From contig OZ037767.1 in the NCBI GenBank assembly GCA_964035545.1, positions 21,778,628-21,842,627 on the forward strand: a stretch of 64,000 nucleotides of DNA. The letters are read 5' to 3'. Position numbers and translations under genes: made by a program. Below the pieces are notes generated by a model. That model had not been told where the DNA came from, did not search any database, and worked only from the letters and a program-made list of their open reading frames with translations. Shown here one piece after another: positions 8,268 through 14,200 of this stretch (position 1 is its first letter; the number at the start of each line of letters is the position of its first letter). Source of the stretch: Bugula neritina (Eukaryota; Animalia; Bryozoa).

Positions 8268-11200
8268 ATGGCTGACGCCGAAACTCAGCCGAAAGAGGAG
8301 ACTAAGGGAGGCTCTCCCAAACCAGATACGGATGTGGCACCACCTCTCATTACCAAACGTAAGTCTCTTTATTTGACTGATGGTCATTGGTTTACTCTGA
8401 GTGAACAGTGCTTATAATGTAGAGGTAGTTTATACACTCCTTACGGTAGCTCAACCCAGACAGTGGAAGGGAAGTTTGTTGAAAACAATTAGCTACATGT
8501 TAGCTACTATCAGTACAGAATACAGGTGGTGCTGAGTACAGGTGGTGCTGAGTAGGGGTGGTACTGAGTACAGGTGGTGCTGAGTAGGGGTGGTACTGAG
8601 TACAGGTGGTGCTGAGTACAGGTGGTGCTGAGTACAGGTGGTGCTGAGTACAGGTGGTGCTGAGTACAGGTGGTACTGACACACTCCACTATATCCTACA
8701 TCTCCTATTAGGTTGACACAGCTGTATAGGTGCAGACATGTGAATCTTCACTTAATATGGATTTCTAATTTCATGTTTGTGTTTAGAACTGGGTGGATTT
8801 GTTTCACTAATATGTGAAATATCTACAAATATCCAATGGAAGTGAGGCTATTTAAAGCCTACAGATGTCTGTGTACACTTTGTATCTGAGAATGTAATAT
8901 ACTTGGTGACTATATTTTAGAGACTGGTTTAATATCACTATGCCGTCTGTTCGAGGAATTTACATACTTGATAGTTGGTTGTTTGGTGAATCTCACGATT
9001 TAGTGCTTTATTATTTGTCCGGTTCTAAATTTTTACTTTTGCAAATTTATGTTTAGTTGTATAACTAACAATACTTACTTTTTACATTGCTTTTAGTATA
9101 ACTCCTATTATTCTGAGATATTGAACATTTTTTTTATTTTCTGCAGAAGACGACGGTGCTAAGAAGAAAGCTGGATCAAAAGCTGTTCAGCCTAAAGCAG
9201 TGAGTTTTAATTTCAAACTTGAATTATTATTTTCTGTACATAGTTTTGTATTTCTGTTTAGAATACCAGAAGGTTTGGGTGGTCTAGTAAACATATGCAA
9301 AGAGAAATTTGCTTCCTACTGTACTTAGTAAGGGCAAGTGTAGTCTAGTCGTTATAAGTGATATACTAAGAGGGTGGAGTGGACCCTAAGTTGGCTGTTT
9401 GTGGTGTTAGAAGGAGTTTCTGTTCAGGAATGTTCGACAGTTGAAGATCTCTTAAGCCATGTTTTCAGCATGGTTTCAGATAAACTTCTCATAGTTTACC
9501 TAAAACTCTCACCTCAGCGTTTTTCACAAGGTGTCCATAGCACACTTGGTGCTACTGTATTAGAACGATGTATTTACAAGAGGTTAGGCAGAAGTTATAT
9601 AAATACTGTTATATTTGACACGTGGAGGCAGCAGGCAGTGCAATGGCATAATAATATGCTAACTTTGCTGTAGTTCTTGGTTTGTTTAAAATTAAAATGG
9701 CTGAAGAGAAAAGTTATTGTTTTAAAAATAACACTTAGTTAGGGTATAGGCAATGAGAAAGTATTTTCTTTTATTATGCCGTTTAATTCATTAAACAAAA
9801 AAGCTAAATTTTTAAATTGATTGTCAAAAGATTTTAACCAATGAAGAAAAACAATTGAAAAGTTGAGATTGTTTTAACTGATATGAGCTGTTTATTGTAA
9901 CTGTGAGGTGAAGGCTGAGCTAGCAAGAACAGGGTGGCATGTTGTTATTGAGTTCACCTTGTTGTACCCAGTCCTTAGGCTATATGTGTGGTACTGAGGT
10001 ACTGAGACTATGTTTTATACATAGCTTATGTGTTATTTAGCTTTTATTCTTGGTATAAAGTCAATATATTTTCAATTCAATAGCCTCCCAAAAAGAATGT
10101 GGTCCTCTCTGGTGAAGCTGTGAAAGAGTTGCAAGCCAAGGCTAAACAGGAGAAAGAAGATCGAAAGAAACAGGTAAAATGAATAACTGTGTCTGTTTAA
10201 ATTGTGTTACATTTGGCGTATTAAGAGGTTTTTTGAAAGCGAGTAATTTTGCTGAATAAACTCTTTAATTGTTCTACTGAGTGGTAAATAGTAAGTGAGA
10301 TTTTTTCTCTGATCAATGCTGATGTGGTATACTAAACCTAGCTAACAGCTGCTTCACACAGCCTTAAAATACATAATACATCCAAAGAAACAGTTTCTAT
10401 AAAACTAGACCAAAAAACATTGAAGGTAATTTACGTGGCATGGCATGCCTACTCTGGTTACTCAATGCTTCAGAGTTGTTTAGTATCTTTAGCAAACTTA
10501 ATATCGTGATTTAATGCTGGATACATGAAGACTGTCTGAGCAGTTGTATTGATTACAAGCTAAAGCAGACTACATAAGTCAATATCCTCATAACACAGCT
10601 AATTGTGGACTAATTACAGGACTTTAAAATGTTTCTTACCAGAGACTCTCTGTTAGAATATAATTTTAGACTTGCATTGTTCAAGTTCTCTAATCAGTGT
10701 GACTATTAATCTCATAAATTAATTAGTCTTGGTTTGAGAGAGCTGAACCGTTGTGACAGCATTGTCTGTTATACTTCTGTGCTGGCTAGTGTAGCTTGAG
10801 TAACTCTGGTATAGCTTGGTTAGCACTCGTGTAGCTTGAGCGGTATATTGCTTACAATTGTGAAGATACACTTTTGAGTTAACTATTTAAGTTTTGTTCA
10901 AACTCTTCCCCTGTAACTCTCAACGGAATAGACTGAAATACATGATGGAAATACCAGAAGGTGCTTCTAATAGTGAATTGAATTTGATTGACGGGTTAAC
11001 AGCAAGTGGGGACTCAGTGCTTGAAAATGAGGAGCTGAAACAAACGAAACTGGATAATTTAAATACTTCAACTGAATTTCGCAGATTCAGTACGAATGAC
11101 AAAGACTTACGCGAAATCAGCTGCCAAGAGGAAAAGTTAACAAGAGAATTTCCTAATTTTCATGAAAGTAATAATCCCAACTCAGAAACACCTCCATTTG

Positions 11201-14200
11201 GTGGTGATGGTGAGTATAGAAAAGACAGGCCTCCAGATGAAAATATTCTGCTAGCAAAAGTAGGAAAGAATATTTGTTTGGGAAAGAATAGTCATAGTCT
11301 ACATGAAAATATTTTTCCAGCTGAAGATAAGAAACAAACTTTAAATGCAAAGCAATTGCATTTCAACAGTTCAGATGATATGTTTCCTGAAAGAGCAATT
11401 GCAGATGGTCAGTTAATAAGTGCTGACGAAGCTGCTAATAATACATGTAAAGATGCAACAGCCAATCAAACTTGTAACGAAAATATTGATGATGGTGAAT
11501 CTGATGATATAGTTGCTCGAGGTAACTTGAACAGAGCATCAGAACAGACCTCAGCTCATGGTAGTTTAGCTCAGCAGATTAATGAAAAGCAACATGTTTT
11601 ACAGCAGAAATCTTTAGTAAAAGGTCCCTTAGCCCTTAGTTTAGATAGAAAGTTTAGTAATGAGAACTTTAGCAATAGCAAGGAAAGATTTAATGTTGAA
11701 GAAAGCGACAATTTGATTAAATACGGGCAGAAAATAATTCATAGAAATGATGCAAATGAAATGTCATCAAACTTCATTTCCGACGGCAAAGAAAGAAGTA
11801 AAGATGTTTTAGGGGCAGCAGAGATTTCTTTTTCTGGTGAAAAATCTGAAATAAAATCGTTAAATATCAACTGGAGTTTTGATGATAGGACTTTGGCTTC
11901 CAATGTAGAGTCATCAAAAGTTGATGAAGAAGCTTTCATTCCTACAACTTCTGAAATATGTGCACAAGACACGCAAGGAATACTTGATAAAGGGTTGGCT
12001 GATGATTCACCAGATAAAAGCATATTGCAAGACGAAGCAAATGCCTATCAAAACGGTTGCTTTTCTAGAATGAGTGAAAATATTGAGCTGGGTGCCAGTG
12101 ATACAGATATTTGTTGTGAAGAAAAAACACCAGAAAATTTATATGGTACAGTGCACTCTAGCCTATCATTTACTGATAGATGCCGTCCCAGCACTAGCAG
12201 ACCAAAGACAGGAAACAGAACTGCTAACTCTATCATACTACCTAGTGAGACAAGAGCTGAACTCCAGTTATCAGCTGTTGAGTGTAATATAGAAAGGCCA
12301 GACATCAATAACAGCCCGGTATCACTTCTAGCTACGAGTACTGAGCAATATTCACCCGCAAATGCTGATCATGAGGTAGTTGATGGCGCAGAAGATCTGC
12401 CAGCTGCAAACGGTAATCAGAGACCAACTGTTGGCGATCACCCAACTTTGGCCACTGATGATGACTCACAGTCGGCTCCTCATGGTTGTGCTGAGCTGAG
12501 CACTGACACTGACTTAAGTGGTGATAATATTACTGACCAAGACTCGCCCGCTTGCCAGGGGTTAACTGTGAATACTGAGTTCCAATTGGCTGCGGATGGT
12601 GACAAAGGCTTGGTTACATGTAATGACCCGCCCTTAGCTACAAATGCCGGCGCAGAGTTATCTATTTCTACTAACCATGCTAACCAGATACTGAACAGTG
12701 AGCATGACAGGCAACCGCCAGCCAACACTCATAGGCAGTCGATTGCCGATACTGAAACCAGTTTGACTGGCTTAGCTGAAAGTAATGCTCTAAGATTGTC
12801 TGTCCACACCGGCAAGGAAGTCTTTTCAAAAAAAGTAGATGAACTAGCTACTGATGATTCACAAAAGCCAGTTAGAAGTAAATCGAATAGCTTGTCTCAT
12901 TCAAAAGACATGCCCAAAGTTCAGATATCTGAACCCGTCAATACTGCAACCCATATGAGTACTAAACCTAAAGCTCCTACCCTAACTAAGTCCTTCAACT
13001 CTTCCACCTGTAAAACAGCTAACAGATCATCCATTAATGCCCATGTTCCTAACTCTCAAACTAAGAATAGGTCAAGCCTAGCTGTCCCAGATAATTTACC
13101 AGTATTAAATAAAAAATCTGGAAGGTTTGAACCTCGCCCAATTTTGGTGACTGTGCCACACTTGTTTGGTCGAAAACGTCTTCGTGGCTCCGTAACTCGT
13201 GAACCTCCTTTGTATGCTCATTCCATTAAAGTGCCAAACTTAGCACTAATAGCCAAGGATCCTGAAAAAGTTGCAGAGTCATCTCTTCCTGAACAGCATA
13301 ACAAACACTTGCTTAGAGTAAGAAGTGCTTTATGGCAATTCCAATATTTTTTATAATTTTTACCAAGCATGCAGTTGTACATAGCTGTTATTTCATTCTT
13401 AGCATATCAGTTTTTGCCTTACAAAAATAATTTTTCGTTGAAGGTTTAAACGTGTTTTTTATCTGTATTTTTCGTTACCTGCTTCATGATGACTTCAATT
13501 GTTTATAATTTATTGTAATCAGTTTGACTTATGCTTTTATGTCATTTGTATATCTATTTTAGGTTGACGAACGATACAAATATCTCTTTGCAGTTGTAAG
13601 TATTGCTGTTACATCTCATCTTTACAGATACTTCACATGTAATTCAACAATTTAAAATGTACTGCTTAGTTGCTATGAGCTATTGATTCTGTGAAAGTTG
13701 ATTTGCCATTTTAGATATACATTTATCATAAATTCCCTAGACGAAATCACAGGTTTTATAGATTACAGTCTCATAGCTTTGTGCTAAAAATAATAATTGT
13801 GTTGTTTATTTTTAAATATATGTGTTTTATATGATGTTGAAATATTATATTATATTATATTAATATATGCATTTAAAAATTACAGATATTGTTTTATACT
13901 TTGTTTTAATAAACCTTTGTATTTTGTTAGGCTGGAAACTATTTAAAACTAGACGTAGCCACAGTAGAAGACCAGGCTGCTTCCTGCGAGAGTGTAAGTA
14001 TCTAATATTCACCACAATATTACTTACCATACGTACATTGTTCAGAATTCTTCTAGTGTAAAATTTTGTTCTTTAGCGTTTGAAAATAATTTGATTAAAA
14101 TGTTTTATAAACAGATTATTGATCGGATGTTGTTGAACGTCTAAATTTGATTGTCTTATAAAATTGTTGGGTCTTCTCGAGTGCTTTGAATCTACATTCA

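Follow-up and report, generated by a model that had tools for sequence, protein, structure and literature searches.

What is a stop-free frame of 820 codons doing inside an early intron of a dynein gene? The DNA analysed here, a 64,000-nt window of the 216-Mb genome of Bugula neritina (all coordinates are positions in this window, on the + strand), carries a DNAH5-type outer-arm dynein heavy chain gene whose intron 3 contains an open reading frame (ORF) at 10894..13356 (+), encoding 820 aa. A first-pass annotation had taken this frame for a probable alternative first exon that would give the dynein a long N-terminal extension. Judging from the sequence features described below, this reading appears to be the best one, and we put at about one half the probability that the DNAH5-type gene uses the ORF as a lineage-specific alternative first coding exon.

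By its sequence, the host gene is a DNAH5 orthologue. A 60-aa host exon finds its best match in the DNAH5 chain of 8j07 (2e-17), with the gamma chain of 7kzm among the next matches. The AAA_8 domain (PF12780) is recognized at 9e-24, and the P-loop motifs GPAGTGKT and GPSGAGKS, of AAA1 and AAA2, are present in the host exon model. In these respects, and in having its first conserved segment in exon 4, the host is like DNAH5 and the Chlamydomonas gamma-type heavy chain. Conservation with DNAH5 begins at exon 4, where the first-pass annotation had placed it; in support, the alignment of a downstream host exon with residues 367-424 of human DNAH5 gives an N-terminal offset of ~40 aa. The exon model is a home-made, constrained one, used only as a source of splice-site matrices, codon tables and intron lengths; it misses a few short exons (e.g., 13931-13993). 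The exons that matter here are the following:

8268..8358, + strand: canonical dynein coding exon 1, with its ATG at 8268, ending in phase 1 (donor PWM 5.32)
9147..9199, + strand: canonical dynein exon 2, 53 nt (acceptor PWM 7.73, donor 4.52)
10084..10173, + strand: canonical dynein exon 3, 90 nt, ending in phase 0 (donor PWM 5.93)
13563..13595, + strand: dynein exon 4, 33 nt, phase 0 to phase 0, the first exon common to both predicted isoforms

Exons 1-3 encode a Lys-rich N-terminus of 78 aa, the length given to it previously. The 5' UTR of exon 1 is probably itself spliced on, since a good acceptor (8227/8228; PWM 4.79, 28th percentile) precedes the ATG by 40 nt.

The open frame in intron 3 is real and beyond chance, as had been claimed. 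No other stop-free run in the six frames of the window comes near its length (821 codons versus 199 for the runner-up). Calculated from its own composition, the log10 probability of meeting no stop is -24.6 (~10^-25), and 500 shuffles gave a longest open run of 152 codons. Each of the other five frames holds 19-134 stops, and the bases are spread over the three codon positions as in coding sequence, with G at 0.31 in position 1 and T at 0.39 in position 3. The ORF ends at a TAA (13354-56) and is preceded by an in-frame TAA at 10888-90; this upstream stop and the lack of a usable phase-0 acceptor at the 5' end, both described in the first-pass annotation, are seen in the sequence. The frame also far exceeds every dynein exon, the largest in the present model being 323 nt. 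Its synonymous codon usage is neutral-like, with a GC3 of 0.30 and an RSCU correlation of r = 0.94 with intron triplets, whereas the dynein exons have a GC3 of 0.53 and correlate with the ORF at r = 0.49. This difference in codon usage counts against an alternative first exon, given that so large a gap would not be expected within one polypeptide if the isoform were a major one.

The ORF is single-copy: one DNA match and one protein match were obtained in the genome, both of them the ORF itself. No terminal or inverted repeats were found around it. This single-copy state at both levels, together with the lack of such repeats, rules out a mobile element and a retrocopy; both origins were considered also in the light of the missing Pfam match, and the transposon match that the first-pass annotation had thought of was not found.

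Searches for relatives of the ORF returned none. Pfam gave no family, the PDB no match among solved chains, and phmmer no match among 1.84 billion representative proteins. A word-indexed search of 5.8 billion clusters also yielded 0 matches, both for the complete ORF and for the basic third at its C-terminal end. In the ESM Atlas, the best score was 0.76 with low recognition, below the level of a lead, which does not make a relative. None of the JGI metagenome loci matched, and an exact-sequence look-up among contigs, with records of the same genome excluded, gave nothing. Since these libraries cover close relatives poorly, homologues of the ORF are to be taken as not detected, rather than as absent. 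Metagenome contigs of a related bryozoan type could be matched through a dynein exon (77% identity), and no ORF homologue was found among these short fragments; they are at most 1.2 kb long with introns that cannot be aligned to the window, so the presence of the ORF in the related species is not readable from them. Conservation of the ORF in relatives, the comparison suggested earlier, could not be shown.

The ORF product is predicted to be disordered, in agreement with the first-pass annotation; a single-sequence AlphaFold2 model has a mean pLDDT of 36.9, a confidence too low for use in a fold search. The acidic-then-basic layout described there is also correct: by charge, the product is acidic over residues 1-600 and basic over residues 640-792 (the last ~170 aa). 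As a point against the alternative first exon, an RKRLR-type basic cluster within it could equally be the nuclear localization signal of a separate protein. The tissue-specific role of a "tether or docking arm" proposed for the extension is speculation.

Around the ORF, the region can be divided into three parts:

10632..10941, + strand: ATG-free leader, putative 5' UTR of an ORF transcript (by ATG count and shuffles)
10942..13317, + strand: coding sequence of the putative alternative first exon, running for 792 codons from the ATG ATG pair (composition change points at 10948 and 13305-13317)
13318..13562, + strand: putative 245-nt intron from the ORF donor GTAAGA to the exon 4 acceptor, 47% T

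At the 3' end, a phase-0 donor close before the stop had been pointed out, and it is indeed present at 13317/13318 (AGA/GTAAGA), the sole phase-0 GTRAG in the ORF. By maximum likelihood, the coding-like composition ends at 13305-13317. Beyond the donor the sequence turns intron-like and T-rich, just as annotated: the next 12 codons rank second among 810 windows in likeness to intron, and 4 of the 12 are aromatic, versus 3.7% in the ORF body (P = 7e-4). The first 39 nt of the putative intron hold this tail of the open frame, together with its TAA. Exon 4, 245 nt downstream, is in phase with the donor, as the earlier reading required; the introns of the gene range from 104 to 1339 nt. Also as stated before, the interval between the ORF stop and exon 4 (13357-13562) has no AATAAA, nor any ATTAAA. 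Its only common poly(A) hexamer is a TTTAAA at 13445, a scarcity that counts for an alternative first exon, and the first AATAAA past the stop is found at 13908, beyond exon 4. Other features count against the alternative first exon. The ORF donor has a PWM score of 2.74, at the 4th percentile among the donors of the gene, and eight out-of-phase GT sites inside the ORF outscore it. Likewise, the exon 4 acceptor (4.25) is outscored by those at 13442 (4.91) and 13626 (6.64). The lack of an X-box in intron 3 and of a detected homologue weighs on the same side.

The main rival explanation, which we regard as somewhat unlikely, is that the ORF belongs to an orphan gene of its own, nested in dynein intron 3 in the same orientation as the host and with a product unrelated to dynein. 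Such a gene would have its own 5' end, begin at ATG 10942, and either finish at the stop at 13354 or continue into a short private 3' exon, from 13317 to 13442 or 13626, which would add 1-4 codons. Its transcript would be polyadenylated in intron 3 or 4 and encode a disordered, acidic protein that carries a basic, NLS-like cluster at its C-terminal end. The stronger acceptors fit this explanation, as they lead to immediate stops (joining the ORF donor to 13442 or to 13626 ends the frame after 1 or 4 codons, respectively), and so does the AATAAA at 13908; yet a working poly(A) signal there, or anywhere before exon 4, would truncate the dynein transcripts. With its start, its stop and its ATG-free leader the ORF is complete, but the 12 codons ahead of the stop resemble intron and not the rest of the protein, and a 3' end of its own, as a canonical poly(A) signal before host exon 4, was not found. 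The codon usage of the ORF is unlike that of the host, and further long ORFs of low GC3 occur nearby in the genome. If the gene were separate, the phase match of exon 4 and the location of the sole phase-0 GTRAG at the composition change point would both be coincidences, with a joint chance of ~0.02-0.06 x 1/3. The ORF is like same-strand nested genes in lying within an intron on the host strand and in phase with the next host exon, an arrangement that allows either a separate product or a chimera. It differs from them in having its own ATG and leader, in being single-copy and in belonging to no known family.

At the 5' end, the sequence features favour ATG 10942 as the place where translation starts. 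The 310 nt upstream of it contain 0 ATG versus ~6 expected (P ~0.001-0.005; shuffle P = 0.0014), whereas triplets of the same composition (AGT, TAG, TGA and GTA) appear 6-9 times each. This gap ranks 7th among the 1331 ATG gaps in the window, and there are 9 ATGs in the 458 nt preceding the leader. The coding-like composition starts, by maximum likelihood, at 10948, right after the ATG ATG at 10942/10945, and the 17 open codons ahead of ATG 10942 are intron-like (rank 6 of 805). The upstream edge of the leader coincides with a TTTAAAA element (10622-10628) and with an acceptor-like AG at 10641/42 (PWM 2.77). No X-box backs the second promoter that the first-pass annotation had placed in intron 3: none is present in this intron, and two are found upstream of exon 1. 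Tracts of A[C/G]T with 3-bp periodicity are seen at 1019-1347 and inside later introns, and none upstream of the ORF.

The same coding outcome could be reached without a second promoter, by trans-splicing of a spliced leader to an acceptor in intron 3 (e.g., 10641/42 or 10833/34), in competition with cis-splicing. We consider this improbable. The ATG-free stretch does start 11 nt ahead of the acceptor-like TTTCTTACCAG at 10641/42, the canonical exon 1 too has its good acceptor shortly before the ATG, and intron 3 offers neither an X-box nor another promoter cue. The candidate acceptors, however, reach scores of 2.77 and 3.78, whereas true sites have a median of 5.8; no report of trans-splicing in bryozoans was found among the papers searched, and the Ciona spliced-leader 16-mer is absent from the genome. 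A GH6 cellulase domain, the other tunicate mark looked for, is absent too.

Could the frame instead be a coding sequence that was inactivated recently or was never active, either a relic without function or an unexpressed ORF of very recent origin, and that has not yet gained stops? We think this very unlikely. The absence of detected homologues, third positions that match neutral composition, and a product that is disordered and low in information would all suit it. However, although third positions are at local equilibrium, positions 1 and 2 are strongly coding-like, and the ATG-free leader and the sharp composition edges at the ATG and at the donor are not expected for junk. Moreover, a neutral frame of 820 codons would survive only for d < ~0.03 (d, substitutions per site), because ~110 x d stops are expected. 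Finally, an internal alternative exon, in which exon 1 (phase 1) would be joined to the AG at 10890/91 and the ORF would replace exons 2-3, can be practically dismissed: the phase arithmetic works (the frame is kept through C+TT) and the frame opens exactly at this AG, but the acceptor scores -1.69, below all true acceptors in the gene, the codons at 10891-10941 are intron-like, no coding signal being seen until the ATG, and a leader free of ATGs suggests a translation start here, not an internal exon.

We return to the alternative first coding exon and the anatomy foreseen in the first-pass annotation. Its start at ATG 10942, the end of its coding part at 13317/13318 and its in-phase join to exon 4 drew independent statistical support from the sequence; the weak donor, the codon usage unlike that of the host and the missing relatives speak against it. 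Under the alternative-first-exon reading, the transcript would have its 5' end inside intron 3, within 10630-10900, arising from an internal promoter or from spliced-leader addition. An ATG-free leader would be followed by initiation at ATG 10942/10945 and by ~792 predicted disordered residues, acidic and then basic. The donor at 13317/13318 would then be joined in phase 0 to the constitutive acceptor of exon 4 (13562/13563). As a result, the 78-aa N-terminus would be swapped for an arm of ~790 aa, with the remaining heavy chain of ~4,550 aa complete. Tentatively, then, the gene may produce two forms of DNAH5, identical except at the extreme N-terminus, where one of them would have an arm of ~790 residues. 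The boldest version of this proposal invokes spliced-leader trans-splicing in intron 3; here the choice between cis- and trans-splicing would pick the N-terminus without a second promoter.

Alternative first exons and promoters that create N-terminal proteoforms are described as a general mechanism in a review (PMC13082882). Read from its sequence, the ORF is like such systems in being a putative private exon that brings along a leader, an ATG and a donor in phase with the first shared exon, and in encoding an N-terminus under less constraint than the body common to both forms. It is unlike them in its size, ~2.4 kb of coding sequence for 792 aa in a gene whose other exons reach 323 nt at most, and in being without detected relatives and, by prediction, entirely disordered. 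The solved DNAH5 (8j07) has 4,624 aa, and the ORF matches neither a solved chain nor a protein in the large libraries.

The N-terminal tip of the tail of outer-arm heavy chains is where these chains dimerize and where the complex meets the docking machinery on the doublet microtubule. We know of no outer-arm heavy chain, nor of any studied axonemal dynein, with a comparable disordered N-terminal extension. Speculatively, the arm could act as a flexible, basic-plus-acidic appendage at the base of the tail, where heavy chains dimerize and dock, or could alternatively have a role in cytoplasmic pre-assembly. Were the ORF a separate nested gene instead, the case would be ordinary, one more unannotated orphan gene. 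If the alternative-first-exon reading is true, it would show clearly how a very conserved gene can take up a large sequence with no detected relatives as an alternative first exon, and an optional disordered arm of ~790 residues would represent a new way to alter dynein docking, pre-assembly or cilium-type specificity.

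The open reading frame (ORF) at 10894-13356 on the plus strand, within intron 3 of the dynein heavy chain gene, runs for 820 codons without interruption; as the first-pass annotation had supposed, it is genuine and could not plausibly have arisen by chance. The second-longest stop-free run in all six frames of the 64-kb window has 199 codons, the longest among 500 shuffles did not exceed 152, and the probability of 820 stop-free codons given the ORF's own base composition is ~10^-24.6. The remaining five frames carry 19-134 stops across the same stretch. Its codon positions show a typical coding pattern: G (0.31) in the first, A and C in the second, and T (0.39) in the third. 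A neutral frame of this length would survive only ~0.03 substitutions per site, yet third positions are already at the local neutral composition; the ORF is therefore almost certainly a maintained coding sequence.

We suggest, at roughly even odds (a figure that includes a variant with a trans-spliced 5' end), that the ORF is an alternative first coding exon joining exon 4 in frame. The following landmarks, first read from the sequence, all hold.

Landmarks of the ORF and its host gene (window coordinates, plus strand)
8268-8358, 9147-9199, 10084-10173: exons 1-3, together encoding 78 aa
10888-10890: in-frame stop TAA immediately upstream of the ORF
10942-10947: start codon, ATG ATG
13317/13318: phase-0 donor, AGA/GTAAGA
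13354-13356: stop codon of the ORF, TAA
13563-13595: exon 4, 33 nt, starting in phase 0

The ends of the coding part were located with a per-codon log-likelihood ratio of ORF-body codon frequencies against intron triplet frequencies. The maximum-likelihood coding start is 10948, right behind the two ATGs, and the 17 open codons upstream of these resemble intron sequence (sixth among 805 windows). Both observations argue against an acceptor AG at 10890/91, in frame with exon 1, which is disfavored also by a score (-1.69) below all true acceptors in the gene. The 310 nt upstream of ATG 10942 contain no ATG, versus six to nine each of the same-composition triplets AGT, TAG, TGA, and GTA; the preceding 458 nt of intron 3 contain nine ATGs. 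Only 0.14% of shuffles of this leader lack ATG, and the resulting 313-nt gap ranks seventh among the 1,331 in the window, several of the larger ones being simple repeats. Depletion of upstream ATGs is a property of 5' UTRs. The ATG-free stretch has two elements right at its 5' edge: TTTAAAA (10622-10628) and an acceptor-like TTTCTTACCAG at 10641/42. The sequence features of intron 3 demonstrate no promoter for the ORF, and our literature search turned up no publication on bryozoan trans-splicing. Canonical exon 1 has a good acceptor 40 nt 5' of its ATG, so its 5' UTR, too, is probably added by splicing (cis or trans). Upstream of exon 1 there are two good X-box (RFX) motifs, and intron 3 has none.

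X-box motifs upstream of the dynein start codon
6816-6829: GTCACCATAGCAAC, exact match, 1.45 kb upstream
7814-7827: GTAGTGATAGCAAC, one mismatch, 0.45 kb upstream

These are plausible ciliary-promoter elements, which would imply that an untranslated first exon precedes the acceptor at 8227/8228. X-box-like matches number 36 in the whole window, above every shuffle (mean 18); eight of them, GTCACTATAGCAAC with 36-bp spacing, form a minisatellite in a dynein intron (40639-40904).

At the 3' side, the maximum-likelihood coding end is 13305-13317. Of 810 windows, only one is more intron-like than the 12 codons from donor to stop, which encode four aromatic residues, against 3.7% in the ORF body (P = 7e-4). 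Among the 32 phase-0 GT sites in the ORF, four reach the score of 13318, which is the sole phase-0 GTRAG; the chance of such a site within the last 13 codons is ~2%-6%, and the phase match with exon 4 contributes a further factor of 1/3. The donor is weak (score 2.74, fourth percentile of the gene's donors, with A at both -1 and +6), and eight stronger GT sites occur inside the ORF, all out of phase. The implied intron of 245 nt is within the gene's normal range and T-richer than the average intron; the T-rich stretch noticed earlier (47% T) extends from the donor region to the exon 4 acceptor. Taken together, the leader, coding start, coding end, donor, and intron indicate a coding part that begins at the ATG and ends at the donor rather than at the stop, the anatomy expected of a first coding exon. 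This anatomy and the phase match speak for the reading proposed in the first-pass annotation; the weak donor, the codon usage unlike the host's, and the lack of an X-box in intron 3 speak against it.

The main rival, which we consider less likely, is an independent nested gene on the same strand. The acceptors at 13442/43 (4.91) and 13626/27 (6.64) outscore that of exon 4 (4.25) and, if used, would end the frame after one and four codons, respectively, allowing a tiny private 3' exon; however, no poly(A) hexamer that could support such an exon occurs before 13727-13908, and both AATAAA and, as we add here, ATTAAA are missing before exon 4. A basic RKRLR-type cluster could serve as nuclear localization signal of an unrelated acidic protein. 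Synonymous codon usage also favors a separate gene, being sharply unlike the host's: the ORF has a GC3 of 0.30 and the dynein exons 0.53 (intron G+C, 0.32), and the correlation of its RSCU is 0.94 for intron triplets but 0.49 for dynein exons. So low a GC3 would not be expected if the ORF encoded a major isoform of a codon-biased gene. Both GC3 classes are present among long ORFs in 200 kb of neighboring sequence, so low GC3 is normal for some genes of the region. In L006, another stretch of this genome (G000:C3:21638628-21648627), plus-strand ORFs at 638-2200, 4722-5633, and 8236-9135 (521, 304, and 300 codons) have a similarly low GC3 (0.35-0.41) and may be a large-exon gene or element.

The ORF occurs once in the 216-Mb genome in both DNA and protein searches, lacks direct or inverted repeats at its flanks, and contains no Pfam domain, which excludes a transposon, a retrocopy, and a duplicated gene. 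No match was found to the whole ORF or its basic C-terminal third in a word-indexed search of 5.8 billion clusters, nor to the ORF by phmmer among 1.84 billion representatives without length filter; the PDB and JGI metagenomes gave no relative, and the Atlas only sub-threshold neighbors. The libraries leave out records of the window's own genome, so the missing self-match carries no meaning, and close relatives are barely represented in them: a dynein-exon query retrieved a single fragment of 73 aa with 77% identity, and the contigs involved, from metagenome assemblies of bryozoan type, do not exceed 1.2 kb.

Contigs of a related animal
L023-L025 (ENA ERZ4903282, ERZ23489974, ERZ1740054): orthologous DNAH5 exon, 77% amino acid identity, low coverage

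Exon boundaries are conserved in these contigs, and their introns are shorter than the window's and cannot be aligned to it. Given such sampling, homologs of the ORF are "not detected" rather than "absent."

Between 13563 and 59002 the host model places 76 exons (30-323 nt), separated by introns of 104-1339 nt, and it includes the P-loops of AAA1 and AAA2. It comes from a custom-written exon finder trained on the window, which misses a few short exons (e.g., 13931-13993) and served solely as a source of splice-site matrices, codon tables, and length distributions. No other intron of the gene comes close to intron 3 in length (3,389 nt; 926 nt with the ORF removed). In exon-by-exon searches, a 107-aa exon hits the dynein D4 module, Pfam AAA_8 (9e-24); the best solved relative of a 60-aa N-terminal exon is human DNAH5 (PDB 8j07, residues 367-424; 2e-17), with the Chlamydomonas outer-arm gamma chain among further matches. 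Relative to human DNAH5 the alignment is offset by ~40 aa, in agreement with the earlier placement of the start of conservation at exon 4.

Several repeats were also observed. A long (TAG/AGT)n + (TAGCAGCAG)n tract (1007-1347), in which a 3-bp unit recurs ~95 times, creates a 180-aa "ORF" (1037-1579) and a 561-nt ATG-free gap; the dynein ATG follows 7 kb downstream. A 15-bp minisatellite, CTTCCTGTGTAGATA (3069-3566; 33 copies, 89% matches), has no Pfam family and explains a 174-aa minus-strand "ORF" (3047-3571), and a 16-bp tandem repeat in intron 1, TACAGGTGGTGCTGAG (8521-8679; ~10 copies, 90% matches), produces a local peak in G+C and GC skew. Late dynein introns carry (ACT/GCT)n and (AGT/GGT)n tracts (49047-49159 and 56167-56343), so 3-bp-periodic tracts are not confined to promoter-proximal positions in the host gene.

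S, N, D, E, and T abound in the ORF protein, which carries a net negative charge through residues 1-600 and a net positive one through ~640-792, bearing out the acidic-then-basic layout first described. The disorder proposed for it agrees with a single-sequence AlphaFold2 model, which predicts few short helices only (mean pLDDT 36.9). As an alternative first exon, the ORF would be translated from ATG 10942 and spliced at 13317/13318 in frame to exon 4, and the product would be a DNAH5 with a ~790-aa disordered N-terminal arm.
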